DNA of 64,000 nt from Takakia lepidozioides (GCA_030704615.1 CM060731.1:58218001-58282000); one strand, 5' to 3'; shown: positions 1-60,217, counted from the stretch's first letter. The notes: a model not told the origin generated them from the sequence alone. A program made the numbers and translations.

Positions 1-3000
1 ATGTGTTATTTGTTCAAGAATTGACCCCCCGCCCTGGGGTTAAATTGTAGTTATAGGTAGGCTTTTCAGCCTAAGGTTCACCCATGTCACAAACTGGAAA
101 CAAGTTCAGGGATGTTTATTCCTAACTTATTTTTGTTCAAGCATTATTCATGCTTCCGACGTGGCTTTAGACACTTCAGCCTCCAAGTGAGCTTCATCCA
201 GCAGGGTCAGTTCTTCCTGCCCAAACTTCAGGTACTTGAAACATCTCCTCTACATTTTTCTGCCATGACTTAGCCTGTTTAACAGGACGGTCTTGCTTCC
301 AAGAAATAGAGTCTGTCATCTTAGGGTATCTGGTATTAGGCACTGAGCCCACCATCTGACCTTGAACTAACTCATGACTTTGAGAGCTCGAGGGTGGTGC
401 GCCAAACTCGCCTTGAACAGCCGCATTAGCTATTGTAGAGCACGCTGACATGCTCTCTTTGAGCACCGAAAGCTGAATGGATTTTAAAGTTTTAGGCATG
501 GTTGGAGTTGCTCTCCCACACGGCAATGCCTACTCCAAGGTAGGCCAACATGGTCGTTGTAACTTCAGTATTAATCCGTCTGCAGTGGAAACATTTGAGT
601 GAGAATATCCAAAGTTTGTGTTTAGTTGTTTGACCTGTTTTGTGTATGTTCATCACAGTTACAACTGGAGGAGAACTCCACAGCAAGATATGTGCTGGAA
701 GGGAGCACACAATGGTGGCATTTAATGATCGTGGGGAGGGATGAGGGGATCTGGCCTAATTTGGCCTACCATGCAGACTTGTGAACTGTTGTCGCTGGCT
801 GGTTTCAAGTGAGAGTGCATGCCCTTTTTTGTCAAGTTGCATTTGTATATGGCTTGTACCAAGTGTGGTCGTTGTTATAAAAGGGACGATATCAGCGAGG
901 CAGGGGAAGAGTCGCAGATGTAGCATAGGTAGCTGAATGTAAAGTTTGTCACACTGGTAGTGGGTACCAAGTCCAGTCTATTCAAACAGGTGAACAGACC
1001 CCTGAGTTTGTGTCACTTATCTTTGTTGTTATGACTTCAAACTACTCTCCAACGAGCTACCCTTTTTGTGTTATAGTGAGGGGGGCAAGTGGATCCCATT
1101 TTTGGAGACCTGGACAGTAACCTATTTTCTAGTGTGCAGAAGAAGGGCCCAACAGTGTGATTGTTGATTGCCAAGGAATTTTGAGTGTCTGTGTTGAAAA
1201 TGTTTGGTTTCTCTTACTGCCATGTTAGTCCTTGAAGAATTTGATTCCATCAGCTTGCTTGCATATGTTGTCGTATTTGTGGGGCTACTATTCAACAAGT
1301 TTCAGCTGTTTGTGCAGCTGATTTGCGGGATGGCAGGTGGCCTGCGGCTCTCCCTCACGCTACCTCCCACCACATCTTGCAAAAGCATTACAGGTGTGGC
1401 ACCCCCTTAGCTTTTGTGCAATCTGGTGTTCCCTACTCATATTTTCACTTTTATTGCGTACCTCATAGCCTAGGTGGGGTAGAGGGGTAGAGTAGTCTCT
1501 TGTTGTTGTAGCACGTGACAACCCAGCTCATCCTTGCGTACCTAATTACCTAAACTGAACCATGACGCTAGATTGAACTTGTCCCTTCTGTCAATCATTG
1601 GTTGGGATCGAAGAGGAATATGGCAATGCATATCATCAATATGTGAATGTTGATTCTCTGAAACTTCACCATGTGGGGGAATATAGAATTTGGAAACGTG
1701 TGGAAAGCAGGTTTGTCATCTATGTGGATCACTTGCACTTATTGAAGGCTGCACTTGCGTTAACCAGAGACGATCCAGACTTGGCCTCTGATTGAAAAGG
1801 TAATTTCATGTCAGAATTAGGTATTATGGTTGTCATGAAGCTGGAAATATCAGTAGGGTTTAGGGTTTGTTGGTTTGTTGTTTTGTTGGTTTGTTGGTTC
1901 TCATGAAGCTGGAAATGTCGGTAGGGTGTTGGTTTGTAGCTCCATCCTTGCCCCCTCATGTTGCTGTCTCCGTACATAACCAACCTGGAGTTGTAAAAAA
2001 CTAGTTTAATGGGAGTGTGGGGCTGGGAGTATGTAGGGCACTCAGGAAGCGGTTAAAAACAATGGTGCAGTCGGGGAGTAAGTTACAGAATTCACCTACG
2101 AATGGGAAGAGTTCCAATGCAGCATCTGAAGATACTATGGGCGAAAGAGGGGGGCACAAATCAGCAGATTACTTCAGGGATGTCCTCAAGCTGAATGCGA
2201 CAAGCAAGAATCCCAAACAACTTCTCTTAGACAAAGACATCACCAAAGAACAATGTGCAAAGTTGTTTGGACAACCTGCAAACAAGAATGGCTACTTTTA
2301 CATGGGTTGTACTGACAAGAGTATGATTCCCAAAATCGAGGACCTGTGGAGTAAGGTTCATGGGTATGATTGTAAGCCAACCGGTGGTATCATTGCAAAC
2401 TTGATGGCAAGGGGCATTGTCTATGAAAAAAGGACTAGACAAAAACTCAATTGGGCAGCATACGCAGCATGGACAGCTAAGCAACAAGAAAGAATGAAGG
2501 AGCATCGAGAAGCAAAGGACCCTGGCAGCACAGACAGTAAGCCAAAGCTAGGAGTTTGTGAAATTGAAAGACAGGCTACGCAAAACCCCAGGTAGAGGCA
2601 AAGAAGGACTGAAACAAATGCTTGAGCAAGTGATTGCAGAGATGGAAAGGAAAAAACATGAGCAAGAGTATGTGACAACTGCCCTAGTGAGTCTTCAGGA
2701 ACTACATGATCTGAAGTATGAGGAGATGTGTGGGGCAAATGAAGAGTTGGAGAGGTTAAAGAAAGGGAAGTTGGACTTGATGGAGAAGACGCGGACTGTT
2801 CGGGTGCAAATGGAAGACAGACAATGGTGTCTTGCAGAGTGTCGGAACAAGATTGCAGACCTAGAGGCCAAACTCTCCCACGAGGGTGCCACAATCCGAG
2901 CCGGGGAAGAGACCTTAATGCAAAAAGGGGAAGAGAGTGTTGGGTTACTGAATTGTGGAAAGAGAAGACAGTCTGAGATGCAAAGGGAATTTGACCAGAA

Positions 3001-3729
3001 GAAATCAATTGAAGCAGAATTTTGGCTCAATGCTGATAAGACCGAAAAAGAGTTCAATGCTTTGTGTGATGCAGGGGACCAGGAAGACAGGGACATTAGA
3101 GTGGCAGAGAATGTGGTCGATGTTGCTGACATAGAGAGGAGTCTTATGCAAGATCAGATTGAGGCCTTGACAAATGGGGACAAAGGACTCGCCATCTATC
3201 CTATGCCTATATGTCATCCTCAAGTGATCAAAGATAGTACGTCCATCAAGGATTTCCTGAAGGTCTCTCCTTGCCCTGTTTGCCACAAAGGTTTCCACTG
3301 TTGGGACATGGTGGTGGCATCTTGTAAGCACACTTACCATCTTGCTTGTATGGCATCCCATATGAAGACGTCAAATAGGTGTAGGGACTTCAGCTGTTCA
3401 GAGATCATGCATCCTGATTGGTGTTCTAGTTTTGGGTTTAGGATTCTTGACCCAGAGGTGCAGGCACTTGCGGAAAAGCTGAGAGTGGTTGAGATGCGCC
3501 AAAGGTGGATGACAAAGCAACTTCACGAAGCCAGGGTTAGAAACACCCAAGTTCCAGGTAAGATTGATTGCAACATTTCCATGTTTTCTTCTTCAGAAAA
3601 CTTGTGTGGTCCAAGGCTGTACCTCTTCATGTCCAATCCTCAGGACTGTAGTCCCAAGATTGGACCTTCAACCCCTTCAACTGACTATGAGTCTGAATGT
3701 GGGACTGCAAATGTTATTATTTGTCCTTT

Positions 3730-4110
3730 TAGTGGAGTGAATCCTTACTGGGGAGTCCTTATTGAGGAGTGTCATTCTTAAGTAGAATTCTAAGTCTTCA
3801 GTCATGTGGAGTGTGAGTCCAAGTGCTGACTCATGTGTATGAGTCGATGTGTTTAGTCATGGGGAGTGTGAGTCCACTTGCTGACTAATTACTGGGAGTA
3901 TGAGTCCTTAATGATTTCCACTGATTTCCAGTTTGGAATCAGAGTCATGTGGAGGGTCAGTCCATGTGCTTAATCATGTGGAGTGTGAGTCCAACTGCAA
4001 AATAATGGATGTGGAATGCGAGTCCTTATTGAGGAGCTTGCTTCTCAACTTGGAATCTGAGTCGTGGCCCAGATGGAGTGTGAGTCCTAATTAGGGAGTG
4101 TGAATCTTGC
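3730..4110. repeat. Degenerate minisatellite-like array of GGAGTGTGAGTCC motifs in and near the predicted intron
   Basis: About eight variants of ggagtgtgagtcc between ~3808 and ~4106 with irregular spacing. Confidence 0.7.
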
Positions 4111-7325: not shown

Positions 7326-8997
7326 CTAAAGACGAGATGTAACTCCAATTCGTATTGCCTCTTTAAACTTCTCCATAGCTCTCGGAGGCAGTCCAATCAC
7401 CACTTCCAAATTATCTTTTTTCCCCTCACCTCCATCTGTGAAGTAAACTATCCCGCGCGGCCCTCGAGTCAGAGGTCCATAGTAAAATGGCTTTCCCCAC
7501 CCAAAGTCAATCTCATAGATGGCCAATCGGGACCAGTCGGTAATCCCAAATGGGAAGTTGACAGAAGCTGGCATCTTCGACTTTAAGTCCTGAATGTAAT
7601 CAATTCCGGATCGCAAGTATTTGTCTGTGATTAAGGAAATCCCTTCTTGTAGAAGCCCCACTGCATAAGACAGAGGCTTGGATAGGAGCTCACCAGCTGT
7701 GGTCATAGCGCAAGCTGGATAAAGTGCGTTACCCATATAGTTGGACGGAACGGGCGGCACCAGCTTTGAACGCACATCAACTACCACGAGGAGTCTGGTT
7801 TTCTGGGATGGCTCCATTCCAAGTGCTTTCGTCCGTGCGCGCCACACATGGGCTGCGAGCGTCTCAAAAGTGGAGCACTTGCTCACACAATCCCCACGCT
7901 TTTCCAATACTTGTCGTCTTAACTCTGTGAGAGTTTCACGGGTGAAATAGAAAGAGTTGTATACGAAATCATCACCCAAGAGATCTTCTGGCAGATCCAT
8001 CATGTTCATAGTGTGGGAAGTCAATCTGAAGTGGAGATCGTGGGCGAAAGATTGTACGGTCCAAGAATGGAGCACTCAAAGGGCTACTGTCTCCACGCGC
8101 TACAGCAGCCCAAGCCCTTAGGAAGTGCATGACTGCGACGCCGTCCATAAACAAATGGTTAAGACTTAAGCCGAATGCGAACACACCTGAACCTTGTTAC
8201 CTGCAAGGACAGAGGGGGGGATTCAACCAAAACTTCACTGTTTCTGATTCAACTTGAGGACTCAGACATGCAGTATTGAGCATGTCCGACATACAATTGT
8301 GGCATATGATATCGAATCTACAAAACTAGTTGGGTCGTCGTGTATTTACGGAACCACCAATTGGACCTCATCAAGGGTGCAAGCATTTGAGGAAAGATGC
8401 ATTCATAATCTAGTATCCGTTAATCGTATTTAGGAACGTTTTAAAGCACTTACAGTGAGCAGGAAGTTTTAATCGGGCACTACATGCATATGTATGGCAA
8501 CCATAAAACACAAAATTTTGAGTTCAGTTATGGGTTACCTGAATAACCAACGCAGGGGTCACAAGTAGCTGATGCAATGGCTCCTGCTTCATTGCCTCTG
8601 GATCTAAGTAGACCAATTGCATCAATCTCGGATCGGGCTTGACAGACTCGGTACCTTTTTCCAACTCAGATATGGCGGCATCTGCCTCAGCTTCCACAAA
8701 CACGACCCCTTTGCCATTACAGTTGACTTGACGGTAATACGGTATAAGTACCTTGGAAAGCGCCTCTCTTATCACTTTTGCTACATTGTCATGTTTTTTG
8801 GTAGGATTGGCATGATACAAGAAAATAGCGTGTACAACCAGGGGCTGATCCAGGTTGGCAAGACGCCCCACACGATTTTGGGTAGGAACATCTACAGTTG
8901 GGTCTTTCAAGATCACTTGGAGCTTTGGCTCAGCTACGATACCCACACACACTCTCTTCAGGCTCGCCAGGTCCCGAGAAAAGGTCACCAAGTCCAT
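7326..8997 (-). pseudogene. BAHD acyltransferase (HXXXD/DFGWG family), disrupted
   Basis: Exon 1 ~8997-8539 (LANLDQ, EALSKVLIPYY, NCNGKGVVFVEA, VIQ). Conserved Q-intron 8538-8201. Exon 2 8200-7326 has VTRFRC, NHLFMDG (HXXXD), CSTFETLAAHVWRART and DFGWG. The usual PLAGRL segment is missing, and frameshifts occur at ~8183 and ~8010. Confidence 0.85.
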
Positions 8998-10429: not shown

Positions 10430-10932
10430 GCACGTGAGGGAGAAAATCCGACACGTGTCCTTTCTTATATGACAAGCGCTCCTGCCAGGCTGTACAAGGC
10501 TCTATGATTGTACGAGCGAGCACGAGAAAGGGCAAGTGCTAAATCTGATCCCACTGCAGCTGTCACGTGCATCACAAGGCCTGTCCGCGTGGCGCCACGC
10601 TCACCCAAATGTAAACACGTCACCTACTTTTTGTTTGGTATTTATGGTGCCATTAAAAACCATAAATCTCAACCGGACCTTTCGCCGGGCAGAATTCTTT
10701 GCCTCGTCAATAGTCAGCTGGAAATACGCGCGGCCTAAGGTCCCGCCAGATTTTCTTTTACTCTTTTCTGTTGCCTTTCCAGTGCTGAGGCGACGTGGCA
10801 GTATAATACTCGCCTATGGGTAAAATTTAAGGCTGGCCCTTACGCAGTGGAGGGCATTCCCCTACGTAAGGTTCCCCGCCAAGGCCGCGGGTGCCATTCA
10901 CATGAATAAGTAATAAGTAATATATATATAGG
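10430..10932 (+). promoter_or_regulatory. Putative promoter of the HAD-like terpene cyclase with clustered G-box/ABRE motifs and a TATA-like run
   Basis: CACGTG at 10431, 10452 and 10564; ACGTGGC at 10793; TATATATATA at 10921-10930, ~160 nt upstream of ATG 11087. Confidence 0.4.
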
Positions 10933-11086
10933 GGTAAAGCCTCGACAATCTTCAACCTGTGCTTTACACTCGTTATGATGCCAATTTCACTACAAAACCT
11001 TGCGCCTTGCCAATCAACTACTTGAAGCCGTAGACAAGGTGTGACATCGGATCGAGTCGATCGCACGGGTGTGGCCTCCTTGCGTC

Positions 11087-12673
11087 ATGAGCAATTTCAG
11101 CAGCAAGCTTTTCCCGTTTCTGAGCTGCAGCAACGGTCCATTCAAAAGTGTATGCTTCGACATCGGTGGAGTTCTTCTTGTGCCGAACCTAGACAACAGT
11201 CATGGCACGCCGCTGCACCCCACTCGATTCAAGCGTATACTGCGCAGCCATGTTTGGTTCCAATATCTGGAGGGCAAGCTATCCTGGGCGGAAACCTTGC
11301 ACAGGGTGTCCCTCGACAACGGTTTCAATGCAGAAGATGTTCAAACATTCGTCGACAGAGCGAGAGGTTCTCTACGTCCTGTTACTGAAATTCTTCAACT
11401 GGTAGATGCTCTAGGTGCTACGGGCAAGCTCAAACTGTTCTGCATGACTAATGCTGCTAGAGAAGACTACGACTACCTCCTAGCGACATTCCCAGAAATT
11501 TTCCAGCAGTTTGATAGAGTGTTCTACTCCGCTGCCGTTGGGATTCGCAAACCCAGCTTCGGTTATTTCCAGCACGTTGTGCACGAGACGGGTTGCAAAG
11601 CATCAGAAACCATTTTCATCGACGACACACTACAGAATGTGGTTGCTGCTGAGTCCTTGGGGTTCACTGGTGTTCTTGTCGGATCGGAAGACGTCAAGGT
11701 GACGGTCAACCTCGTATTGTACCATCTTCGCACTGACGAGGAGAGGCTGTTAGCCGCTGCTGATTATTTGTTGCGGAGGAAAGGACCAGTTGATAGATGT
11801 CCCTCTCTTACGTCAGACGGCCTTCGAGTCACACAGCAATTCGACCACTTTTTTATTGCGGAGCTGCTAGAGGACCCAGACTTCCTCCCCATGGACAAAG
11901 CTCCAGCAACCGGGACTTTTAACTTTTTCCCTCCAGAGGAAAGGCTGGTCCAAAGAGATCAAAATACCAACGCGGCCACCCACACAACTTTCCCAGATGA
12001 TCTCGACACAACCTCAATGGCGCTAAGTGCCTTGTACAAATTCTCGAAAGTGGACATGAAAACAATCTACGCCGTATTGGACAAGATGCTAGAAGCGAGG
12101 AACGAGGACGGCATTTTCAACATGCATTTCGACCCCTCGCGTCCAAGGGTAGATACTGTCAATCTGGTCCACATATCCCACCTATTTCACCTAGCAGGCC
12201 GACCCGCACCTGTGAAGAAGACCGAACAGTTTCTGTACAACTTGCTCAAGAGCAGAGCTTATCTGCGTGGGAGTATGTACTATCCCCTGCCGGACACCTT
12301 TTTGTGTCAGCTTACTCGCCTTGCATACAAGTTCGAGGAGCACTTCCAAAAGGCAGGCTTTCTGGAACTGCTGGCGCAGCGGGTGAGCGAGCGTGCTGGA
12401 AAGCAAGGGAGCGCTCTGGCCCTTGCAATGAGACTGCTCGCTTGCGAGCTGTGCGGCATACGCAACACCAGCGATCGGGAGCAGCTGGCACGGTTGCAGA
12501 ACGTGGATGGGTCATGGGATCTTTGTCCCTTCTATACCTACAGCGACCCCAAAAGCTGGTTCGGAAATAAGGTCACCACAACTGCTTTTGCCCTGGCTGC
12601 GCTCCGCAGTGGATATCACAACCCCAACTTGGGTGTTGAAACTCCATGCAATTCGACATGCACAGAGGCATGA
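11087..12673 (+). CDS. HAD-like hydrolase / class II terpene cyclase fusion (drimenol/albicanol synthase type, AstC/AncC/DMS-like), intronless, 528 aa
   Basis: N-terminal HAD motifs: FDIGGVL (I), MTNA (II), GIRKP (III), FIDDTLQN (IV). The C-terminal domain has FPDDLDTTS (DxDTT protonation motif) and the QW-like motif LQNVDGSW. The ORF is uninterrupted. Confidence 0.88.
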   Translation: MSNFSSKLFPFLSCSNGPFKSVCFDIGGVLLVPNLDNSHGTPLHPTRFKRILRSHVWFQYLEGKLSWAETLHRVSLDNGFNAEDVQTFVDRARGSLRPVTEILQLVDALGATGKLKLFCMTNAAREDYDYLLATFPEIFQQFDRVFYSAAVGIRKPSFGYFQHVVHETGCKASETIFIDDTLQNVVAAESLGFTGVLVGSEDVKVTVNLVLYHLRTDEERLLAAADYLLRRKGPVDRCPSLTSDGLRVTQQFDHFFIAELLEDPDFLPMDKAPATGTFNFFPPEERLVQRDQNTNAATHTTFPDDLDTTSMALSALYKFSKVDMKTIYAVLDKMLEARNEDGIFNMHFDPSRPRVDTVNLVHISHLFHLAGRPAPVKKTEQFLYNLLKSRAYLRGSMYYPLPDTFLCQLTRLAYKFEEHFQKAGFLELLAQRVSERAGKQGSALALAMRLLACELCGIRNTSDREQLARLQNVDGSWDLCPFYTYSDPKSWFGNKVTTTAFALAALRSGYHNPNLGVETPCNSTCTEA

Positions 12674-15840: not shown

Positions 15841-17523
15841 CTACGATTCTGGCTCCTTCTTTATCTTTTTCTTCTCGCTTTTGGGATCTGACTCGCTAGG
15901 TCCCGTGTGTTCCTCTGTGTCTTTCTTCTTCTTCTTCTTCTTCTTCTCACTCTTCACCACAATAGCAGGCACCTGTACATCTGCCATCTCCACATCCTTC
16001 TTCTTGTTCTTCTTCTTCTCACTTGTAGCCTCCCCATTAGGAGTCCCAATGTCTGCTTCATCATCATTCTTCTTCTTCTTTTTCTTCGTAGTACCCTCAG
16101 GAAGTTCATCCAGATGGCTTGCCGCTTCCCTCGACCGCTTCTTCTTTGCCACATCTCCATCCTCCACGGGCTCGTCGACTTTCTTTGTCTTCTCCTTTTT
16201 CCTGGGCGTGTCTCCCCCTTCCACTGCCTCCCTTGGAATTTTAGTATCCTCCTTGGCAGGCGCGGGGCCCGTCTCTAAAGAAGTAGGCACATTTCTAAGC
16301 CACTCGGCGGGAGTTTTTTCATTCGGTTTCCCATGCTTGTCCAGAAGCCCATCGCTGATCATCTTCTTCTTCGTCGATGCCCGCGGACCAAGACCCCACT
16401 TCCTCGGATATGTGTCTCTTTCCATGACCACCCTCTTCACTTTGGCCACTACGCCATGGTCGCAGGTAGCCATGTCCGATGTTGTCATCTGGGCGATCCC
16501 AAGCGCAATAGCCTCCCCTTTGGTGGTCATCAACACCACCTCCTCTCCTACTTCAATTGCTTGCTCATATCTAAGGAGCCCAGGAATCATGAGCTTCGCA
16601 CCATAGCAGATAGCATTCACAGCACTGTCTTTCACCACTAGCCGCTTGTAACTGGTGAGAAGAACCTCCAGAGGCATTATAGCGCGCCGCAAGTAACTCT
16701 CGTCCTTGTGATTGTCATAAACCCATTGCGCATCCAGCACGTCATGCATTGTCACCAGGTTGTCCTTCTCCCCTAAAATTCCTGATCGCACCCTCCGAAG
16801 CTCCTGCATGTGACCGCCCACCCCCAGGAGCAGACCCAAATGGACACACAGTGTTCGAATGTAGGTCCCTGCTTCGCACGAAACCCAGAACACCACCAAA
16901 TGCCTCTCAGCATCATACTCGAGCAATTTGCTCTCATAGATAGTCCGAATCCGCAGCTGTCGCTTCACAGCTGAGATCAGAGGTGGCCGCTGGAACAGAG
17001 CCCCGGTCAGAGTCTCAATTGCCTGTGCAACCTTTGCAACATTATCAACAGCTGAATGCAACCTAGCCACGCACACGTACTCTTTACCTGCACCCTGCTG
17101 GGCCTTCACAAGCCTGGTGGCCCTATCCACACAGACAATCAAACTTCCAGTAACTTTGGGATCTAGTGTCCCACTGTGCCCGGTTTTGTCAACCCTCAGC
17201 ATCCTTCGAATCCATGCCACCACCTCGTGCGACGAAGGGTTAGCGGGCTTGTCCAGATTGATCACTCCATACCGCACGTAATCAAACAAGGGTCTCTTCA
17301 AAGGAGAATGCCCAGCGGGGATGGGTGTGTAATGCCCTGTTCTAACGTTCAGCTTGTCGTAATTCTTCAGCAAAATTGGCCACTTGGAGGTATCCAACGG
17401 AGGCGTGGTTGTCTGGGGCTTTATGAGGTACTCCGTATCTGCGTCCTCGGCGACCACCAGCTGCCCTCCTTCTCCATGACCCTCCTTGTCTTTCCTCTTC
17501 TTCTTGCTTTCTGAGCCCGCCAT
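15841..17523 (-). CDS. CBF5: H/ACA snoRNP pseudouridine synthase Cbf5/dyskerin/NAP57, intronless, 560 aa
   Basis: TruB-family motifs [17 protein letters not shown] and [14 protein letters not shown] (catalytic Asp), PUA domain ([10 protein letters not shown]), [12 protein letters not shown], Lys/Glu-rich tail; ATG at 17523. Confidence 0.97.
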
Positions 17524-17664
17524 TGTGGCCAGCTCGGGAGCCAAAGAGAGGGCAGCAGAGCAGCGACGAGGTGAAAAGAGCGAGCAAGTGTGAAGCCTCA
17601 CGCACAAGTGCAGGAAGCCAGCACACTCAAGGCTGCACACCGAAGTAAAACACTCACACCACGC

Positions 17665-27328: not shown

Positions 27329-30300
27329 CCCTAGGTTCATAGCAGATTAAAAATGCCTAAGCAAATCTGTGATTTTTCAAGATTTATGCCTAAAAGGTTG
27401 AAAAAATAATGTGAAAGTTCCTAATTCAGTAAAATTGTCTAAAAAACTCCTACTCTATATAATTTCTATTGAAAACAAAAATAAATGCCTCCATTAATGT
27501 TTAAAAAGTATAGGCCAACTCCCTAGGTCCATACAACCTCCAAAGGACCTTCCAATGATAAGTACTAAGTACAGAATCAAGCATTACAGAAGAGGATTTT
27601 ATTTATATTTTATTTTTTGGGAGGATTTCCAAGTTAGCAGGATAAGTATTAAGGTACGCAATTATTACTGCAGATTAAGATGTGGGTATCAAGTTGTCAC
27701 CGCCTTTTGCAGTTGGATTTCTCTCTCACTCTCAAATGTCACTGCTTAATTTTATCTCGTAAGCCAACCACTTGTCGGGGTTGTTTCAACGACAGAGCAA
27801 AAAATTGAAGCACAATTTGAGCCCATTACCTTTTGATCTCGTGGTGAGTGTATTTGGGCCAGGATTTAGCCTGCGGGCTAAAAGTTGCACCTGACCTAAG
27901 CTTGGCCCAGGCAAGCCCAGGCTGGGTTCCTCCATTGTTAGCCATCTCCACATTTGCGCCCGCATCGTGTAGTGAGCTCTCGGACGCCATCTCCATTAGA
28001 AAAGACTTTTTTTTTAGGGTTTGTCTTGGGGAAGAAGAAGAGGGTACGTGAGACCTTTGGGGATGGAAGGAGAAGTTCCAAGTGATGAAAGGTGCCTGAC
28101 ACCAAATATTATGGATGAAAAATATCGCGGCCCTTCACCTTGAGGGCAGGGGGTCGGGACACGAGAGGGGCTGCCCCTGTGGTGGGGGCAGTGACGACAA
28201 TAGATACGGGGGCTAAAGCACCCTTGAGTGTCCAAGGCACGCAAGGAGGCGGAGGCGCTCACTAGGTGGAGCCCCGCACACCGGGTTGCGGTAGGGGGTG
28301 GTTCCACGAGGGGTGGTGGTAGCTTAGTGGGACTTGACATAGGACTCACCATGGGGGCAGAGACCTTGTGGTGGGAGTCGTGGGGAGTCTTGGGACTCAT
28401 CACGGTCCAATGGGACCGTGGTGAGTGGGCCAAAACTCACCGCGACTCATCACCGGGAATCGAGGGTTTTCGTGGTGGTTCGCCATAAAATGACATGGTT
28501 GTTTGTGAAACCCCCGCGGACAGTCACAAAAGTATATATAGGGAGTAGTAACCCCGAGAACGGTGCAAGCCCGTTGGTGACCAAAAACTAGTGAGTAAGA
28601 GTGCGAGCCGGAAAGCGACCAGGGTGTGGGGAGCTATTCCGGACTGCCATCGACCAAATGGAATTTCCACTAGGCCCAGTTTCTGCTTTACGTGAGACAA
28701 GTGAAGGGAGAAGGCGATAGGGAGTCGAGCCCAGATTGGATCAAGGGGATTTTGGAGAAATACCAGGATGTGATGCCGGAGGATTTTTCAAGCGGCTTGC
28801 CACCGCGAAGAGGAGTTGACCACAAGATTGAGGTGATGCCGGGATCGGAGCCGCCTGCCAAGGCGCCCTACCGGTTGAGCCACAGAGAGTTGGTCGAGCT
28901 GAAGACTCAGCTCAAGGATCTAATGTCAAAGGGGTACATCCGGCCGAGTAAGTCACCTTACGGAGCCCCGGTGCTATTCGCAGACAAGAAGGATGGGACG
29001 CTGCGGATGTGTGTCGATTACAGGGCTCTAAATAAGGTGACTATCAAAAACCGGTACCCTTTGCCAAGGATCGACGACCTCTTTGATCGGTTGGCAGGAG
29101 CGAAGTATTTCAGTCGGATCGATTTGTGCTCCGGCTACCATCAAATTCGAGTGGCGGAAGGAGACGAGGAGAAGACCGCGTGCAGGACAAGGTATGGTTC
29201 ATATGAGTTCTTGGTGATGCCTTTTGGGCTCACCAACGCACCCGCGACCTTTAACACGCTAATGAACAGCCTTTTCCAGGAGTGGTTGGATGTGATCGTG
29301 TACATCGACGACATCTTGGTGTACTCGAAAACAAAGGAAAGCACCTGGAGCACCTAAAAAAGGTGTTCCAGAAATTATGGGAAGAGAAGTTGTATGCCAA
29401 AGCTTCAAAGTGCGAATTCGGGGTCACAAAAGTGGAGTTCCTGGGGCAGGTGATTACACAGGATGAGATAAAAATGGATGACAGAAATGTGAGGGCGATC
29501 TTGGACTGGAAGCCTCCGACTTCGGTCCCGGGAGTGCGATCCTTCTTAGGACTCGCCTCCTATTATCGAAAGTATGTGAGAAATTTTGTCAAGATCGCGG
29601 GGCCGTTGTCAGACCTTCTGTGTAAATCCAAGGTATGGGTATGGAACACCTTTTGTGGCCAAGTTTTTGCCGAGTTGAAGCAGCGGATGGCGGAAGCTCC
29701 AGTCCTGAAAATCCCGGAGTTCGACCACCCATTTGAGATTCATACGGATGCATCAGACTTTGCGATTGGAGGTGTACTCATGCAGGATGGACGTCCAGTG
29801 GCTTACGAAAGTAAGAAACTGAATGAAGTGGAGCGACGGTGGCCAACGCACGAGAAAGAGATGAAAGCGGTGGTGCATTGCCTTGAGCTTTGAAGCCACT
29901 ATGTTGGTTCCAACCCGGTGAAGGTGTTCACGGACAATGTCACGGTGAAGTATTTTGCCACGCAGCCTAAGTTGTCCCCAAAACAACTTAGGTGGCAAGA
30001 CACTTTAGCGGTGTTCGACGTGGATATCCAGTACAAACCGGGACGGGACAATGTGATGGCCGATGCTTTAAGTAGAAAGCAACAGCTCATGCTAGTGTAC
30101 AAGGGCGAGACGGCGCTCCAAAGGAAGATCCGGAAGGCTTACCGGAAGGATGAGATGGCGAAGTCCGTGATGCGGGACTTGAGGATGGGGGTTAAATCAC
30201 AGTTCCACTTGCAAAATGGACTACTCCGGTATAAGCAAAAACGTCTCTACGTGCCGAAGGGAGGGATCAGAGATAGTCTCTTGAGAGAATGTCATGATGG

Positions 30301-33300
30301 CCAGCTTTGCGGGCCACGGCGGAGCCAAGCGCACCGCAGCACTCTTGAAGAAAGAGTATTTCTGGCCCAAACTGAGGGAGGAGGCCAAGGAGTATGTCAA
30401 GACATGCACCATATGCCAACAAAACCGGAGCGAGTACAAAAAACAAGCGGGGCTGTTACAACCCTTGCCGATTCCAGAGGGGTCTTGGGAAAGTGTCTCG
30501 ATGGATTTCATGACTGCTATGCCGCCGTCAAAAGGATTCGATGCAATCATGGTGGTGGTGGATAAGTTCAGTAAAATGGGCCATTCCATCCTCACCAAAG
30601 AGACGGCAATGGCGCATGAGACGGGGTGACTTTACTTCGCCCACGTCTTCAAGCATCATGGACTCCCGAAGAATATTGTCTCGGACCGCGATCCAAAGTT
30701 TACAAGTAAGTTTTGGAGGGCACTTTGGAAGAAAATGGGGACGAGGCTCAAAATGAGCACCGCCTTCCGACCTACGACGGACGGCCAAACGGAAAGGGTG
30801 AATTCCGTGGTGAAGCAGATCTTGCGGAATAACGTGTTGGCAGACCAATCGGATTGGGTGGAGCATTTGGATGCGGCAGAGTTCTGTTATAATAACACAA
30901 AACATTCCGCAACGGGAGTTTCCCCCTTCGTATTGGTTTGTGGAAAAGCACCTCTGGTGCCGACAAGTTGGGCCGCCCAAGACGTTGAGGAACCGGTAGC
31001 AGCGGCACTGCTGAAAGAACGCGAGCGTTTGTTGAAGCTCGCAAAGTACAACATTGCCAAAGCTAGGAAACGGTATGAACGGCAGGCGAATCGGAAGCAG
31101 ATGGAGGTTAAGTTTGAGGCAGGCATGGAGGTCTGGCTGAACATCAAAAATTTTCGACTACCTCCGGAAGTGAGTCCGAAGTTCGTACCTCCGTATGCGG
31201 GACCTTTTCGCATCCGGAAGGTTATGAATGAGGATGTGTATGAACTGGAGCTACCGGCAAACAGCAAGGTGCATCCGGTATTCCACGTCTCCCTTTTGAA
31301 GCCTTACTTCAAATATGAAGTGCATCCGAATCGGCCTCAAGTGTTGCGTCCGCCACATGTGCTGTTGGATCATGAAAATGAACCTGAGTACGAGGTGGAG
31401 GCAGTGTTTAAGTCGAGGAGGTTCAAGAATCGAGAAACGGAGTATCTCGTGAAATGGAAGGGCTATCATCATGTGGAGGCATCTTGGGTGCGTGCCTAAG
31501 AAATGGGGAATACATCCGAGGCAGTTACAGCTTTCGAAATGCGACCTCAAAAGCGGAAAAAATGTTGATGGGGACATCAACCTTGGAGCGTGGGGGAGGA
31601 AATGCATACTTAGCCCGGCTTAGCTAGCTCAGTAATCCGATTGCAAAAACTTGTATTGTACAAATTTTGTTATAAATGAAATGGTTTCCAAATGTTGTGC
31701 GTCTTATTTTGTTTGGAATGGTGATGCATGGTATGGTTGGCTAGTGTATAAAATGCATGCTAAGCTTACAAAGTGGGAAAGGTAAATTGGATTAATCGTG
31801 TGTTTGTGTAGTGTTGAAATCGGGTGACTCCCACCCAAGGGGCAAAGAAACTTGCACCTTCGTTGGGAGTTCACGTGCTAGTGCGCGCCTGGCGCGTGCG
31901 TGTACTATAACTGCGCTACCGAGGGGGTTGTCTTGTAGTGTGGGCTAACGCGGAAGCTACGTGCTTCCGTTCACGTACTATAATCATGTAGCCTCGGGAC
32001 GAAGTTGTAGTGCGGCTTCGGCGTGTTCCCGTACCTCAGGCCAACATTCCAAGGCGGACCCAATTGTAGTGATTGGGGCGCACAGTTGGTTCAAGGTTAT
32101 CTTCCTAGTCAAAAAGGGTTCAAGGCGAACCCTTGCTCAAGGTGATGCCAAGAAGTGACATCACGAGCGGTCGCAAGCAAATGTTGTTGCAGTAAGGCGA
32201 TTCGATCCTTGGGGATGATCGTTCCTTGGCCCTGAAGTGGGTCAAGAAGAGTGCACTGGGAAGAGCTTGAGAGGCCCCAACCTTGGCCGGGACTTGGAGG
32301 AAGTCGGCCGAACTAGTTAGTGGAGAGTAGAGTCAAGTGGGGGTTTAGTTCTTAGCCATGGGATGCTATGGTGCGGAAACAAACTCCTTGATGTGGGACG
32401 CCACAACTTGGATGTTCGTTTCTACAAAATAGACAAGTCGATGAGGACATCGACTACCTATTGGTAGGGGTGTGTGTCACGGCCCTTCGCCTTGAGGGCA
32501 GGGGGTCGGGACACAAGAGGGGCTGCCCCTGTGGTGGGGGCAGTGGCAACAATAGATGCGGGGGCTAAAGCACCCTTGAGTGTCCAAGGCACTCAAGGAG
32601 GCGGAGGCACTCACTAGGTGGAGCCCCGCACACCGGGTTGCGGTGGGGGGTGGTTCCACGAGGGGTGGTGGTAGCTTAGTGGGACTTAGTGGGGGTGGCA
32701 TAGGACTCACCATGGGGGCGGAGACCTTGTGGTGGGAGTCGTGGGGAGTCTTGGGACTCATGACGGTCCAATGGGACCGTGGACCGTGGTGAGTGGGCCA
32801 AGACGCACCGCGACTCATCACCGGGAATCGAGGGTTTTCGTGGTGGTTTGCCATAAAATGGCATGGTTGTTTGTGAAACCCCCGCGGACAGTCACAAAAG
32901 TATATATAGGGAGTAGTAACCCCGAGAATGGTGCAAGCCCGTTGGTGACCAAAAACTAGTGAGTAAGCGTGCGAGCCGGAAAGCGACCAGGGTGTGGGGA
33001 GCTATTCCCGACTGCCATTGACCAAAGGGAATTTCCCCTAGGCCCAAATTGGGAGAGGGTCTTGTGGAGGAGTAAAGGGGGACCATTATGTCCCGGTGAG
33101 CAGCCGAAGCTCCGAGTTGGCCCGGTGGCCAGTTAGGGAGTTAGGCGCGCGCATCAGAGCGAGTAGCTATGACTTGAAGGGGAGCTTACCGAATTGAGGT
33201 GCGCGACAAAAAATGTGTAATTTACATAAATCATTTTTCAAAGTGCCTAAAAAGAATATTTCAAATTTAATAATTATTAGGCACTGGGGTGCCTAATCTG

Positions 33301-52869: not shown

Positions 52870-55800
52870 TGTTGGAAGTAATTAAACATATCTACAACCA
52901 GACATACTGACAAGTCACAGTTAACAATAGAGATAAGCCTCGGTTAGCTAAAAGATAGCTAAAGTTAGCTTTAGTTATTAGTGACTCAAGTCATTGTACC
53001 AGAATAGCAAGTGGAGATAACTTAAGTAAAAGCATGGAGTTATGCTATAGTTATCTCAGCTATTCTAGATTAGACTTTGAGTATAAATACTTTGGGTGGA
53101 GAGTTCTCAGTAATCAGTTTAAGCTTTAGTCTAAGACTTTAGTTCTTGCTCAATTCTAACATGGTATCAGAGCCATTCTTCTCTAGGTAAGAGTTGGTAG
53201 TTGAGATTGAGAGAACTTGATTATGGCTGGAGCGTCATCTTCTAGCAATCCTCCTTCTATGTCTATGACGAGTGCGTTAGATGTGAGAGTGGAAGATCGA
53301 TTCAATGGAGCTAACTATCAAACCTGGAAGTTTAGGATGGAGATGGTTCTTCTAGACAAAGATCTATGGGGAGTGGTTGATGGATCAGTCCCAAGACTTG
53401 ACACTATTGTTAGCCAAGGCATATGGGATAGGAAAGATCAGAAAGCAAGAGCTAGCATCATCACAAGCTTGAGAGACAATCAGTTGCATCTCATTATAAG
53501 CGCTAAGAATGCTAAGGATGTTTGGGATAAGCTAGCAAGCATATATGAGACGAAGGATGTCACATCGCAAGTGTATGCGACGCAGAAGTTCTATGGTCTG
53601 AAGATGACCGAGTCAGACTCAGTTGAACAACACTTGAATTTGTTTTGTGTGTTGCGAGATCAACTAGTTTCTGTGGGAACTAATGTGACTGATGAACACG
53701 CCGCAGTGGTGTTATTGGCAACCTTACCTGAATCCTATGATGGTTTTGTGGTGTCCCTAGCAGGACAAACCAACTTAACTATTGATGTTGTCATAGGACT
53801 TCTCCTCAAGGAGGAAACAAGAAGAAAAGGTCAAGGTACGTCTACAGAGGTAGACAGAGCTTTGTTCACAGGCAAGACTGGAGTAGTCTTGAATAGAAGA
53901 CTCCCTTCACATATGTCTCAGAAGTCCCAGAGGTTTCAGAAACCTCAATCTAGCTCAAAGATCAAAAAGCCCAAAGTAAGATGCTTTTATTGCAAGAAAC
54001 TTGGTCACATGATCAAGGATTGTAGAAAGCGCATTGCAGATGAGCGCAGCAGAGAGAGTCAAGGAAACATAGCTATTCATCAGAGGAATGCTATTTTATT
54101 TGTTGTGTCTCTCTCAGCCACTACTAGACAGAAACATGTGTGGTATGTTGATTCAGGAGCATCTCAACATATGAGTTCAGAGAAAGAGCATTTCTTATCC
54201 TATAGATCTCTTTCACCTACACAATATGTTCTTTTGGGAGATGATAGCAAACATGCCATTAGTGGGGAAGGCTCAGTCTCTCTTATGCTCAATGAAGGGG
54301 AAACCATAGAGGTGGAAAATGTCCTACATGTCCCTACTTTAACAAAGAACCTGTTGTTTGTAAGGCAAATTGTTGCAAAGGGATACAGAGTGGTATTCCA
54401 AGATGAGAGTTGTACTATCACAGATAGCTCAGGAGCTGTGGTAGCAAGAGCTATTCTTGATAATTGCTTGTATAGATTACAACATCATGTCTCTAGTGCT
54501 CTTACCACATTTTCACCACAGTTGGGATCTACACCTGTCATGTCAGAAACAGAGTTGTGGCATAGAAGGTTAGGTCATGTGAGCATTAAGAAGTTGAGAC
54601 AGATGCAACTCTCAAGCCATCTTGTGGAAGGACTACCATTGAAGGAGATGAGCGATATGCGTCTATGCAAAGGTTGCTTGGAAGGGAAGCAACATCGAGG
54701 TCAATTTCCTAAGGATGGTGGACGAAGAGCCACAAGTATATTGGAGATTGTACATTCTGATGTGTGTGGGCCAATGCAAACCACATCACTTGGAGGAGCA
54801 AGGTACTTTGTGACATTCATTGATGATTTGTCAAGGAGGGTTGTGGTGAATTTCTTAAGACAGAAAATCAAGTGCTAGAGAAATTCAAGGAGTTCAAAGT
54901 ACTTACAGAAAAACAAACTGGAAAGCCTCTTAAGATTTTGAGATCTGACAATGGTGGTGAGTACATCTCAAAGGCTTTCAATCAGTTTTGTCAAGAGAAT
55001 GGAATAGCTCGACAGTTTACTGTTCCATATACACCTGAGCAGAATGGTGTAGCTGAGCGGATGAATAGATCACTACAAGAATCTGCAAGGAGTATGTTGA
55101 AAGAAGTGAATCTTTCAAATCATTTTTGGGCAGAAGCTGTTGGCACTGCAACCTATCTTCACAACAGAATACCTACCAAATCAGTGTTGGGAAAAACACC
55201 AGAAGAGGTATGGAGTGGTCAGAAGCCTAGTGTGGCTCATTGTAGGATTTTTGGATGCCGTGTATATGTCCATATCCCTACTCAGAAGCGAAAGAAACTT
55301 GACTCCAAATCAGAAGAATGCATCTTCATTGGCTACACAGAAGGTGTAAAGGGATATAAGTTGTTCAATAAGACAACTAAGGCTGTCAAACACAGTAGGG
55401 ACGTAGTGTTTGATGAAAGCTTCATACCCTCTTTGGTAGTGGGAGAAGATGACATGGGAATGAGCTTAGAGCCATTACACCATTTTCAAAATGAGTCTTA
55501 TGAGGAGCCAATACAAGAGATGGCTGAAGCAAATGATGGAGGTGTTCAACTTGATGGAGTTGATCAAGGAGTCGAAGTTGGTGAACCACTTGTTGATATG
55601 GACTCTAGAGATGAAATTGAAGATGTGCCAATTCTAAGAAGATCTCAGCGGGAAAGAAAAACTCCTAGTAGGCTGATTATATCTATGAGTGCCATTGAAG
55701 CTATGGAAGAAGCATCACAAGTGGTTGAGCCTGCTACTTATGAGGAAGCGATGCGCTCTCCAGACAACCTACAATGGGAAGAAGCAATAAACTCAGAGTT

Positions 55801-57666
55801 GGATTCATTGATGCAAAACAAAGCATGGACACTCACTAGGTTGCCTACAGGACGAAGAGCCATTGGTTGCAAATGGATCTTCAAGTTGAAGTACAAAGCT
55901 GATGGATCTATTTACCGGTACAAAGCTCGTCTTGTAGCTAAGGGCTATACACAAATTCAAGGAGTGGATTACAATGAAACATTTTCACCAGTGGTGAAGA
56001 TTTCTTCTATCAGAATGTTGCTAGCTCTTGCAGCTCAATATGATCACGAAGTTCATCAAATGGATGTTAAGACCGCATTTCTGAATGGAGAACTACAAGA
56101 AGAGATCTACATGAGACAACCTGAAGGGTTTGTACAGGGAGGAAGTGATATTGTGTGTAAGCTGCAAAAGAGTTTGTATGGACTCAAACAAAGTCCTCGA
56201 GCTTGGTATGCTAGGATCGATGCTTACCTCTTAAAAGCAAGATTTGAGCGAAGCATTGCTGACACAAACATCTATGTGAAAAAAAAATGGGAAAGCAATT
56301 TGTGGTCATAGCTCTATATGTGGATGACACAATCATTGTCACCAACGATCATCAAAGGTTGTTGCCAGAAACCAAAGCACTGTTAAGTGCTGAGTTTGCC
56401 ATGACTGACATGGGTGAGATTCGGTTCTGTCTTGGTATTCAAATCAGCAGAGATCGATTGAACCATACAATATTCATGCATCAACGACAATACATTGAGA
56501 CAATTCTACAAAGGTTTAAGTTGGAGATGAGTAAGCCAACATCAACTCCTCTCGAAGTTGGTTTGAAACTTACGAAGGATATGGCACCTAAGACTCAAGA
56601 AGAGCAAGAAGATATGAGGAAAACTCCTTATCAAAGCGCAGTCGGCAGTTTGATGTATTGCATGGTTTGTACTAGGCCAGACATTGCACATTCAGTGGGA
56701 GTGGTCTCACAATTTCTTTCAAATCCCGGACAAACCCATTGGAAAGCAGTGAAGAAGATATTTCGATATCTAAGAGGAACATCAACCTCTGGTCTACTCT
56801 ATAAGAGAGTGGAAGATCCAAGTTTGTTGGGGTTTGCTGATGCTGACTGGGCAGGAGACATTGATAGTAGAAAATCAACTTCAGGCCATTGTTTCCTCCT
56901 AGCAGGTGGAGCTGTATCTTGGTCTAGCAAACGACAAGTTGCAACAGCGTTGTCATCAACAGAAGCTGAGTACATGTCCATTACACAAGCAACAAATGAG
57001 GCTATTTGGTTACGGAAGTTGCTTGGAGATTTGGATTATCTCCAATCACTACCTACGACTCTCTATTGTGACAATCAAAGTGCGATTGCACTGAGTCAGA
57101 ATCCGAAATATCATTCAAGGACGAAGCACATTGAAGTGCAACATCACTACATACGAGAAGTTGTATGCAAGGGAGAGATCAAGATGATCTATTGTGCTAC
57201 AGGAGATATGGTTGCGGATATTTTGACGAAGAGTCTACCACAAACAAAACACATAAAGTGTTCAACCTTACTTGGTGTCTCTTCTCCAAAGACAAACGAA
57301 GTAGCTCAATGATATGGTTTAATTGAGTGGGAGTGTTGGAAGTAATTAAACATATCTACAACCAGACATACTGACAAGTCACAGTTAACAATAGAGATAA
57401 GCCTCGGTTAGCTAAAAGATAGCTAAAGTTAGCTTTAGTTATTAGTGACTCAAGTCATTGTACCAGAATAGCAAGTGGAGATAACTTAAGTAAAAGCATG
57501 GAGTTATGCTATAGTTATCTCAGCTATTCTGGATTAGACTTTGAGTATAAATAGGGAGAGCTCGGAGGGTGGACACAGCTTGTTGTGGTCCCATGGTTGG
57601 GTGGAGAGTTCTCAGTAATCAGTTTAAGCTTTAGTCTAAGACTTTAGTTCTTGCTCAATTCTAACA
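52870..57666 (+). mobile_element. Full-length young Ty1/copia LTR retrotransposon
   Basis: LTRs 52870-53161 and 57334-57666 (TG..CA); TSD TACAT; PBS TGGTATCAGAGCC 53162-53174 (tRNA-iMet); PPT ~57325-57333. Confidence 0.97.
53223..57312 (+). pseudogene. Copia gag-pol polyprotein with two frameshifts
   Basis: Gag, zinc knuckle CFYCKKLGHMIKDC, protease VDSGAS, integrase (HSDVCGP, RSDNGGEY, NGVAER), RT (QMDVKTAFLNG, YVDD), RNase H (ADADWAG). Frame breaks at ~54865 and ~56285, both in A-runs. Confidence 0.92.
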
Positions 57667-58293: not shown

Positions 58294-60217
58294 TAAACAT
58301 GCAATGAATGGAAAGGGAAAAACGAATTTGGAAGAATCAGTCATTTCAGAGAAGAGCCGACGGAACGATCAAGGGTGTCGTATTAAGGTCTGGTTTCAAC
58401 AACAGTCCTGTATGAAGATGAGGTGAACCAAACAGGTGTAGATTCTGCTGAGATGGGTGCCCTCATCCCCTCCAACCCAAAAACGCACGCAAAGAGTTAC
58501 ACACCTTTCTTTATTTGCTCTGCAGGTTGGGGCCCTGCATCGCCAATGTTGCATGCCAATTCGACTCCATAGCCAGGTCCTTTGTTCCGCTGCAGGATGT
58601 AGGCCTCCAGCAGTATCTACGCAAGAAGAAAACATCGCGTTGGCCATAGCTGGCGCCATCGTGTCGCTCAATTTGTTCTTTGTGGCGGAAATCTCGACCT
58701 GCAGTCTTCGAACCACTGCAATCCACCGAAGGAACTGCGAATGGGGTGATACAGTGCCCAGATATACCTCTGTACATCCCAGAATGTTTGCTCAAAACCA
58801 GCAGCTTTGGCATGTAAACCGTCACGGGTGCCACGCCATTGCAGTGACTGAAGTGGTCCAATTCCTTCCACAAACTTCAATTTGAGCTATTGAGCTGGGA
58901 TGACAACATGATGCGGCTGCCCGCAGGCAGAGTCCAAGATCATGTCTTCTTCTTCGGCTGAACTCCCGGGAGGCCTCACATCGTGCAAGATTGCAAAGGG
59001 CGTGGTTATGGAGCTGCAATGCGATTCCACCTGGGCAATGCCGGGCCTGATATCCTTGCAATTGGTTGCTATGGGGCTTTCGCAGCCTGCAGGCAAACGG
59101 CTAGGTACAATGTCACTCTGTGCTTGTTGTTGCGGTTCCTTTCTGATATCTCTCTTCTCGTTCCAGCCATGGCATATCCCCATAGCCCCCGCGGTCATAT
59201 TTTGTCTGAGGGTGAAAGTCATGCAAAGCTCGTCCATAGCCCGTGGGAATTTCGGTGAGGTATAATGCACTTCTTAGTGTGCAAGGCTAGTAACGGAAGA
59301 TGTGCAATACGCATTGTTGTGCTTCCTCTGTAGCAATGCAGAGCCAAAATTGCTAGTCACGCTGAGGGATGAGAGATTCACCGTCATTGATATCAATCCT
59401 CCCAGAGCCGGTTTTCCATTTCTATCCAGCAGGGCATAGAGCGCCTCGGCACAGCCCACCCGATTTCAGACAGAGGAATTGAGTGCTGATGTAAGGCTAG
59501 TTAATTCGAGCAAAGTTGCACTAGCCCTGAAACCAAAACGTTGCGACAGATGTCTATTGTTGCTAAGTTAGGCGCAACAAAGCCCTGATAGCAATCAACA
59601 TTCTCGAGAAATGAAAGGGGAATGGATATTATGGAAAGAATTGACGGCGTTCCATCGATAACTTGGAGCTGCTAAAGGTCTAAGTTTTTATAGTGCTTGC
59701 ATTCAGGCCAGGAAATGAGCAAAGAACAGCTGTGGCAGGAGTTCTTCTCCAATCCTTCACAATGGGGGGGACAACAGCTTTGATAAGGTGAGGCTATCTT
59801 CACTTAAGATTTGGAAAATTTTATCAATGGGGTCTTGTAATTGCAGCTGCCATGATGGTGTTTTGTGGATTAGACTGTGTCTTCAGTTTCCAGGGCTCCT
59901 GCAAATTTTGCTCTCCATCCGAGAAAAAGGCTGCAAAACTGAGAATCTTGCTGTTGCTGTCAGTAGGTCGTTTTTCCTATATAGCAGGGCATGACAGAAG
60001 GTTGTTCAAGCTTGTTTGTCCGAAAGATGCTTGGAGCTTTGGTTGGTATAGTCTGGTCTACATGAGGCTGTGCTTTGAAGGAAGCCCCGGCTGCTTTCCA
60101 CTGGTCATTTCCACAGAAAATCCAAGCTCTCCAGACTTACGACATAAGCACTCCAAGGAGCCCCTCCTGATTGAGGGTTGGTCTAACCCTCCTTGGGTTA
60201 AAGCAGAGTTAGCTGCG

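Follow-up and report, generated by a model that had tools for sequence, protein, structure and literature searches.

Enzymes that fuse an N-terminal HAD phosphatase-like domain to a C-terminal class II terpene cyclase barrel (TC-beta) are described from bacteria and fungi, and all characterised members of this family convert farnesyl diphosphate (FPP) to a drimane skeleton (PMC13244436, PMC9128629). Here a member of the family is described from the moss Takakia lepidozioides. It is encoded at positions 11087-12673 on the plus strand of a 64,000-nucleotide stretch (GCA_030704615.1 CM060731.1:58218001-58282000), which is called the window throughout, with all positions counted from its first letter. 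In our view the locus is likely to be a true nuclear gene of the moss, coding for a HAD-TC-beta cyclase that turns FPP into a drimane and dephosphorylates it, and to have come down, by vertical descent in mosses, liverworts and ferns, from an ancient horizontal acquisition, probably a single event, at an early stage of land-plant evolution.

Several relatives provide the framework for comparison. AsDMS, the bifunctional drimenol synthase of Aquimarina spongiae (PDB 9MHS, 9M7D-F), has a HAD site made up of D33 (in the D-x-G motif I), S128, K161 and D185-D186 with Mg2+ (PMC12232559). In AstC of Aspergillus oryzae, a drim-8-en-11-yl diphosphate synthase (PDB 22TZ/22TY), D273 is the general acid, D271 is the proposed base, and T274 is required (PMC13244436; PMC9128629). 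K314 of AstC anchors the alpha-phosphate, and D273 is polarised by Y361 and N324, the latter through a hydrogen bond; the HAD-like domain of this enzyme lacks the nucleophile and is phosphatase-dead (PMC13244436). The fungal synthases AacA (albicanyl monophosphate), AncC (albicanol) and DrtB (drimenol) belong to the same family as the Takakia protein and share with it the expected logic of class II cyclisation followed by dephosphorylation in the HAD domain (PMC13244436), but identity to them is about 30%, so that neither the double-bond isomer nor the number of phosphates removed is transferable by homology. Mutagenesis has revealed that the product outcome is set cooperatively and is not predictable from single residues (PMC13244436). 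The TC-beta domain itself shares distant homology with the beta domains found in class II terpene synthases and in plant terpene synthases (TPSs; PMC9128629, PMC13244436).

Porella and Makinoa among the liverworts and Blechnum among the ferns are documented sources of drimanes; in liverworts and in some ferns, the drimanes polygodial, drimenol and albicanol are characteristic defence compounds (PMC13364417, PMC9031474). Known drimenol synthases of plants have so far all been class I TPSs of flowering plants (PMC13244436). No published report of the HAD-TC-beta family in plants was found; the papers found describe bacterial and fungal members only. An earlier reading of the window (the original prediction) had stated that a few non-seed plant examples are reported. 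Entries from Riccia sorocarpa and Adiantum nelumboides do exist, annotated as hypothetical proteins, while a published report could not be verified. A parallel is offered by the MTPSL enzymes of non-seed plants, which are likewise microbial-type terpene enzymes of bryophytes and ferns, apparently absent from seed plants and attributed to ancient horizontal gene transfer (PMC12890914). MTPSLs are class I alpha-domain synthases, whereas the Takakia protein is a fusion of HAD and class II beta domains without a class I domain.

The gene and its parts are as follows.

11087-12673, plus strand: cyclase coding sequence, single exon, 528 aa (reading frame, matches to sequences of solved structures, AlphaFold2 model)
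11141-11701, plus strand: HAD phosphatase-like domain, about residues 19-205 (Pfam, NCBIfam and motifs; definitions from PMC12232559)
11792-12610, plus strand: class II cyclase alpha6-alpha6 barrel (TC-beta, AstC-like_C), residues ~236-508 (22ty_A match, AlphaFold2, Foldseek)
11999-12013, plus strand: DxDTT motif, D305-L-D307-T308-T309 (motif scan, family alignment)
12170-12172, plus strand: His362, at the position of AstC Asn324 (family alignment)
12497-12517, plus strand: QxxDGSW (QW-like) motif, Q471-N-V-D-G-S-W477 (motif scan, family alignment)
10917-10931, plus strand: TATA-rich element, a possible core promoter as judged from its sequence, about 155-170 bp before the ATG

The open reading frame spans 11069-12673 on the plus strand, with its first ATG at 11087 and a TGA stop at 12671-12673. 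Its 528 codons carry no stop or frameshift, and the chance of an open frame of that length is ~(61/64)^528, or about 1e-11. Alignments are collinear with intron-free bacterial genes and with both Riccia copies, leaving no intron-sized gap. The reading frame, the motif positions and these collinear alignments confirm the intact, intronless 528-residue fusion of HAD, DxDTT and QxxDGSW elements that had been predicted. If the gene is expressed, as seems probable, transcription could start from the TATA-rich element listed above. An exact-sequence look-up of the protein returned no identical entry.

Pfam recognises the HAD domain (PF00702) at residues 20-192 with an E-value of 1.4e-9, and NCBIfam likewise detects the N-terminal HAD domain only; the Pfam set used predates PF28380 (AstC-like_C), a family that is precomputed on homologues in the protein database. 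Searched with phmmer against PDB sequences, the cyclase finds its best match among solved structures in AstC (22tz_A; residues 17-508, E 9.8e-59), followed by AsDMS (9mhs/9m7d; residues 19-506, E about 6e-53), and the isolated TC domain of AstC (22ty_A) matches its C-terminal half at E 2.7e-31. The AlphaFold2 model, built from a 50-sequence alignment, has a predicted local distance difference test score (pLDDT) of 92.2 and a predicted template modelling score (pTM) of 0.90. Foldseek returns full-length matches to AsDMS entries only (E ~1e-31), with stand-alone HAD phosphatases on the N-terminal half and squalene-hopene cyclases on the C-terminal half coming next. The former include YihX and the N-terminal domain of soluble epoxide hydrolase (TMt ~0.7), so the N-terminal half is a Rossmannoid HAD fold with a cap, and the C-terminal half of the model is a helical barrel of the alpha6-alpha6 class II beta-domain type. 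These full-length matches and the fold support the assignment, also made in the original prediction, to the family of AstC, AncC and bacterial drimane cyclases such as AsDMS. No Pfam match to a class I alpha domain (PF03936 / PF01397; DDxxD, NSE/DTE) was found in the cyclase at E <= 1, which places it outside the typical TPS and MTPSL families. The further statement that it is unrelated to plant TPSs was too strong, given the distant homology of its C-terminal domain to the TPS beta domains.

At the level of residues the Takakia protein keeps all four HAD motifs (D25-I-G27 as motif I, T121 as II, K155 as III and D179-D180 as IV). With the nucleophile Asp and the Mg2+ ligands in place, it resembles the bifunctional enzymes of the AsDMS/AacA type and differs from AstC, whose HAD-like domain, without the nucleophile Asp and metal site, is inactive. 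In the cyclase domain D273, D271, T274, K314, Y361 and Y448 of AstC correspond to D307, D305, T308, R352, Y399 and Y485, and the acid of AsDMS is D333. The family alignment is nearly invariant at the two catalytic aspartates, with conservation at 133/139 sequences in the D307 column and 134/139 in the D305 column. The basic residues that anchor the diphosphate are retained as R352 and R354 in a conserved RPR motif (R368/R370 in AsDMS), and D25, T121, K155, D179, D180, D305, D307, T308, T309, R352, R354, Y398, Y399 and Q471-W477 all agree with the family consensus. AsDMS thus has the same full-length two-domain architecture and shares the D-x-G motif I, the S/T, K and DD motifs, DxDTT, the RPR arginines, the YY pair and QxxDGSW. 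Unlike the Takakia protein, with which it shares 25-28% identity, it is bacterial, falls in a separate clade, and has Asn at the His362 position and DDxxE in place of DDxxQ. AstC is fungal, falls in another separate clade, and has N324 where the Takakia protein has H362.

On these grounds the gene is a good candidate drimane synthase. By analogy with its characterised relatives, its most likely function would be to cyclise FPP in the cytosol, by a class II reaction, to a drimane-type diphosphate, which would then be dephosphorylated. In the proposed mechanism, which draws on AstC, AsDMS and AacA, FPP would bind in the C-terminal alpha-barrel, its diphosphate held by R352 and R354 and also by K489. 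D307 would protonate the terminal C10=C11 double bond and start a cation cascade to the trans-decalin drimane skeleton, and D305 would then take up a proton to leave a diphosphate of drimenyl or albicanyl type. The HAD site, with D25 as nucleophile, T121, K155 and the Mg2+ ligands D179/D180, may subsequently remove one or both phosphates, so that the end product would be a drimane monophosphate or alcohol. An N-terminal extension is lacking and there is no room for a transit peptide, which suggests a cytosolic enzyme acting on FPP derived from the mevalonate pathway.

Several observations weigh against this proposal, the chief of them at residue 362. Of the Asn and Tyr that form the polarising pair in AstC, the Tyr is present (Y399) and the Asn is replaced by His362. 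Asn occupies this position in ~127/141 family members, among them both Riccia copies, Adiantum and the closest relative, and His is found in only four others. Since the closest relative, a metagenomic sequence recovered in two samples (L001 and L003), keeps Asn, the N362H change is specific to the branch of the window copy itself. The substitution could weaken or alter catalysis, and it is the main source of doubt over activity. In addition, a broken BAHD acyltransferase gene and no P450 lie beside the intact cyclase, a setting that would also fit a redundant spare locus. One alternative is therefore that the reading frame is intact while the gene is decaying or neofunctionalised, a redundant duplicate whose catalysis N362H has weakened or changed and whose tailoring partner is already dead. 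In its favor are the His found where ~90% of the family, closest relative included, has Asn, the frameshifted and shortened BAHD neighbour, and the window's lack of a P450. Set against this are the uninterrupted frame and the retention of every near-invariant position other than 362. His also recurs at that position in the four other members mentioned above. In squalene-hopene cyclase the partner of the catalytic Asp is a His; class II cyclases can thus operate with such a pair, and the Takakia enzyme may still be functional.

Substitution patterns also speak against decay. Between the window cyclase and L001/L003 the proportion of synonymous differences (pS) is 0.65-0.76, with synonymous sites saturated, and that of nonsynonymous differences (pN) is 0.19-0.21, giving a dN/dS of no more than ~0.15 and indicating purifying selection. 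Being an average over a long divergence, this ratio is no proof of present-day constraint on the window copy, a point that counts among the reservations above. The terminal branch of the window protein in the maximum likelihood tree is not inflated, at 0.16 compared with 0.37 for its sister. Low dN/dS at saturated synonymous sites, taken together with the host-like base composition at third codon positions (GC3) described below, argues against both decay and contamination. We regard loss or redirection of function as unlikely, though it deserves to be taken seriously.

A second alternative accepts an active family member and assigns it a different chemistry. The enzyme could use another prenyl diphosphate (for example geranylgeranyl diphosphate, giving a labdane-type product) or could stop at the diphosphate, and would then make neither drimenol nor albicanol. 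At product-determining positions it does differ from all characterised enzymes: the Takakia protein has T484/Y485 where AstC has H447/Y448 and AacA has R443/F444, and M397 where AsDMS has R415. With product control being cooperative and single residues not predictive (PMC13244436), these differences leave room for such a departure. Against it, every characterised member uses FPP and yields a drimane (PMC13244436, PMC9128629), and the four HAD motifs are in an active configuration like that of AsDMS. A different chemistry seems quite unlikely. Because product-influencing positions differ and the outcome is cooperative, the prediction for a drimane synthase is confined to a drimane-type monophosphate or alcohol made from FPP.

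The distribution of the family bears on how the gene came to be in a moss. In word-based protein searches, started from the single sequence or from a profile, generic HAD words took over and no more than 11-12 matches came back. Since these searches were saturated and the case for horizontal transfer depends on family distribution, an exhaustive search of representatives was run, and it recovered 91 clusters at E <= 1e-30. Named plant members are Riccia sorocarpa (two genes) and Adiantum nelumboides. The named fungal members are many Dikarya (Penicillium, Aspergillus, Botrytis, Mycena, Auricularia, Desarmillaria and Hymenopellis), and the named bacterial members are Aquimarina and Streptomyces. 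Two members of the bacterial clade lie on clearly prokaryotic contigs, one beside a PemK toxin gene and one overlapping a P450 gene in an operon. In the latter (L009 6001-8795, GCA_976551095.1) the HAD-TC gene overlaps the start of the P450 gene by 4 bp, a cyclase-P450 pairing like that of fungal clusters. In the Atlas, the nearest cluster carries the automatic name 'Drimenol cyclase drtB' and all large clusters are fungal. A metagenome scan added one fragment, L003.

The main maximum likelihood tree (LG+C20+F+G4, 38 sequences, unrooted, with many tips lacking an organism name) resolves three clades, plants (100/99), bacteria (100/98) and fungi (99/97), which meet at one node. Within plants the window protein groups with the relative of about 62-66% identity (100/99), then with P0001 (94/88) and then with the Riccia pair (100/99). 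Ferns, with Adiantum, fall outside mosses and liverworts (98/92), and P0015 is the outermost branch of the plant clade. The order of the plant clade, (moss + liverwort) and then ferns, is that of the species tree. Riccia R1sor_025452 and R1sor_001834 and Adiantum L7F22_065884, at 50%, 48-50% and 31-39% identity, differ from the window protein in carrying Asn at the His362 position. P0001 comes from a 7.6 kb contig (JGI sample 3300041965) on which this 55%-identical full-length relative lies among short open reading frames, mostly without family matches; the contig has one weak tyrosine-recombinase match and looks like a eukaryotic contig under a prokaryotic gene caller.

This topology makes the window cyclase an old gene of the plant clade, and any transfer predates the splits among mosses, liverworts and ferns. 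Neither the crown Dikarya nor the bacteria that were sampled have the plants nested within them. Midpoint rooting placed the root on the fungal branch in one sampling and on the bacterial branch in another. With three clades meeting at one node and a root that moved with sampling, the donor cannot be named, and the attempt to read one from the tree was abandoned. The phylogeny proposed in the original prediction thus yields a separate plant-only clade and leaves the donor unreadable. Its claim of a horizontal acquisition in this plant stands as to the horizontal origin, which is the most probable one, and fails as to the plant, since the gene belongs to a deep clade of mosses, liverworts and ferns.

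Being unrooted, the tree leaves formal room for an ancient origin in eukaryotes followed by many losses, as well as for a transfer out of plants, a further point on the side of the doubts listed above. In the vertical version an early ancestor, eukaryotic or streptophyte, would already have carried the family, which would then have been lost many times, with no transfer into plants. The meeting of three single clades, one each for plants, fungi and bacteria, at one node, a plant order that follows the species tree, and the lack of any donor group around the plants are all consistent with it. The patchy distribution of named members, limited to Dikarya, non-seed land plants and a small number of bacteria (Aquimarina, Streptomyces), and the fungal nature of all large Atlas clusters point the other way. 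Among the 91 representatives (E <= 1e-30), moreover, none that is named comes from algae, seed plants, animals or protists, an absence that is weakly shown because most tips are unnamed. Vertical inheritance throughout therefore appears very unlikely, and a horizontal origin, and an old one, is likely.

The family, then, is a known one, and what is new is its plant membership: a conserved, plant-resident clade in a kingdom for which no published report was found. The drimane chemistry of liverworts and ferns matches the distribution of the family in plants. A bolder synthesis is possible, albeit somewhat doubtful. Under it, HAD-TC-beta would have entered land plants once, before the split of bryophytes and vascular plants, and would supply the missing drimane synthases of mosses, liverworts and ferns and a third, independent terpene-cyclase family besides TPS and MTPSL, with Asp307-His362 a variant resembling the dyad of squalene-hopene cyclase. 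The conserved moss, liverwort and fern clade is a concrete and easily testable candidate for drimane chemistry, and with it non-seed plants would gain another terpene enzyme family of microbial type, in parallel to MTPSL. Its members, predicted plant-adapted cyclase-phosphatases encoded by single exons, may be useful in metabolic engineering, and the natural Asn-to-His variant of the catalytic dyad may be of use in mechanistic work.

The gene structure of relatives bears on how long the family has resided in eukaryotes. The relative L001 (JGI metagenome contig Ga0558083_0073840; 62-65% identity) has a GT-AG phase-0 intron of ~1.2 kb after GIFQ, at 2142-3348. Proteins P0003-P0007, from ENA, JGI and Logan, all end at the same GIFQ spot, each having run into the intron and been wrongly called a truncated protein. 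L003 comes from another sample and has the same exon 2 as L001. Of the two L001 exons, which were analysed separately, the tree takes in the exon-1 product (P0005) only. No interruption occurs in the homologous part of either Riccia copy, so the intron-free state is ancestral in plants and the intron was gained later. A canonical intron in a relative of about 62-65% identity favours long residence in eukaryotes. Logan contigs L004-L006, which carry homologues, have no poly(A) at their ends and so cannot be called transcripts.

A contaminant or chimeric assembly, with a microbial gene wrongly joined to plant scaffold sequence, is extremely improbable, as the cyclase falls in the plant clade rather than in the fungal or bacterial clades, its nearest relatives are sequences with spliceosomal introns and Riccia chromosomal genes, its GC3 is host-like with no composition break, flanking repeat or excess of bacterial signals, and plant genes lie 2-3 kb away on either side.

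The remaining features of the window place the cyclase among plant genes and remnants of transposable elements.

7326-8997, minus strand: plant-type BAHD acyltransferase, probable pseudogene (exon 1 ~8997-8538, GT-AG intron 8537-8201, exon 2 from 8200)
15841-17640, minus strand: CBF5/dyskerin, single exon, 599-aa open reading frame (DKCLD, TruB_N, TruB_C_2, PUA), 3.2 kb downstream of the cyclase
59852-62542, plus strand: PPR gene, intact, single exon, 896 aa (domain matches)
53217-57312, plus strand: Copia long terminal repeat element, coding region (gag, integrase, RVT_2) in three consecutive open reading frames separated by frame breaks
28692-31499, plus strand: chromovirus fragment with Ty3-type integrase, SH3 and chromodomain pieces, in a GC-rich block of about 0.50-0.52
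2558-3781, plus strand: 407-aa open reading frame with a coiled-coil-like front (weak ATG14 match) and a weak RING-finger match, of no confident family

The original prediction had set the cyclase among intron-rich genes and transposable-element debris. The BAHD intron and the Copia and Ty3 pieces fit that description, and the single-exon CBF5 and PPR genes do not. Since these neighbours are also intronless, intronlessness is by itself no sign of foreign origin here. GC3 is 0.575 in the cyclase against 0.603 in CBF5, and neither a composition break nor an excess of bacterial-type promoter or terminator signals was found at the cyclase.

The BAHD gene lies head-to-head with the cyclase, 2.1 kb upstream, and is of Streptophyta type with HxxxD and DFGWG both present. 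Its frame shifts near 8000-7975, where there is no space for an intron and no homopolymer run, and in exon 1 the conserved stretch after 'YY' is shortened, so that it is probably a pseudogene. Clustering of the cyclase with a P450 was considered and rejected, as a search of all frames across the 64 kb turned up no P450 heme-binding motif beyond one match to the motif expression, which falls out of frame within CBF5. The Riccia copies are likewise unclustered, with no P450 or BAHD gene within ±10 kb. No second cyclase fragment was found within the 64-kb window, and capture by a transposable element or segmental duplication is unsupported, there being no flanking direct or inverted repeats save one 49-bp match at chance level.

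CBF5 confirms the moss identity of the surrounding sequence. Its best named matches are to Ceratodon and Physcomitrium (925-927 bits), followed by Sphagnum (897) and liverworts (857-870). In a 27-taxon tree it falls within the moss clade (Shimodaira-Hasegawa-like approximate likelihood ratio test, SH-aLRT, 99), in a basal position beside Sphagnum and Bryopsida. Its terminal branch is fairly long, at 0.23, which points either to a moss lineage outside those with named genomes or to a divergent paralogue.

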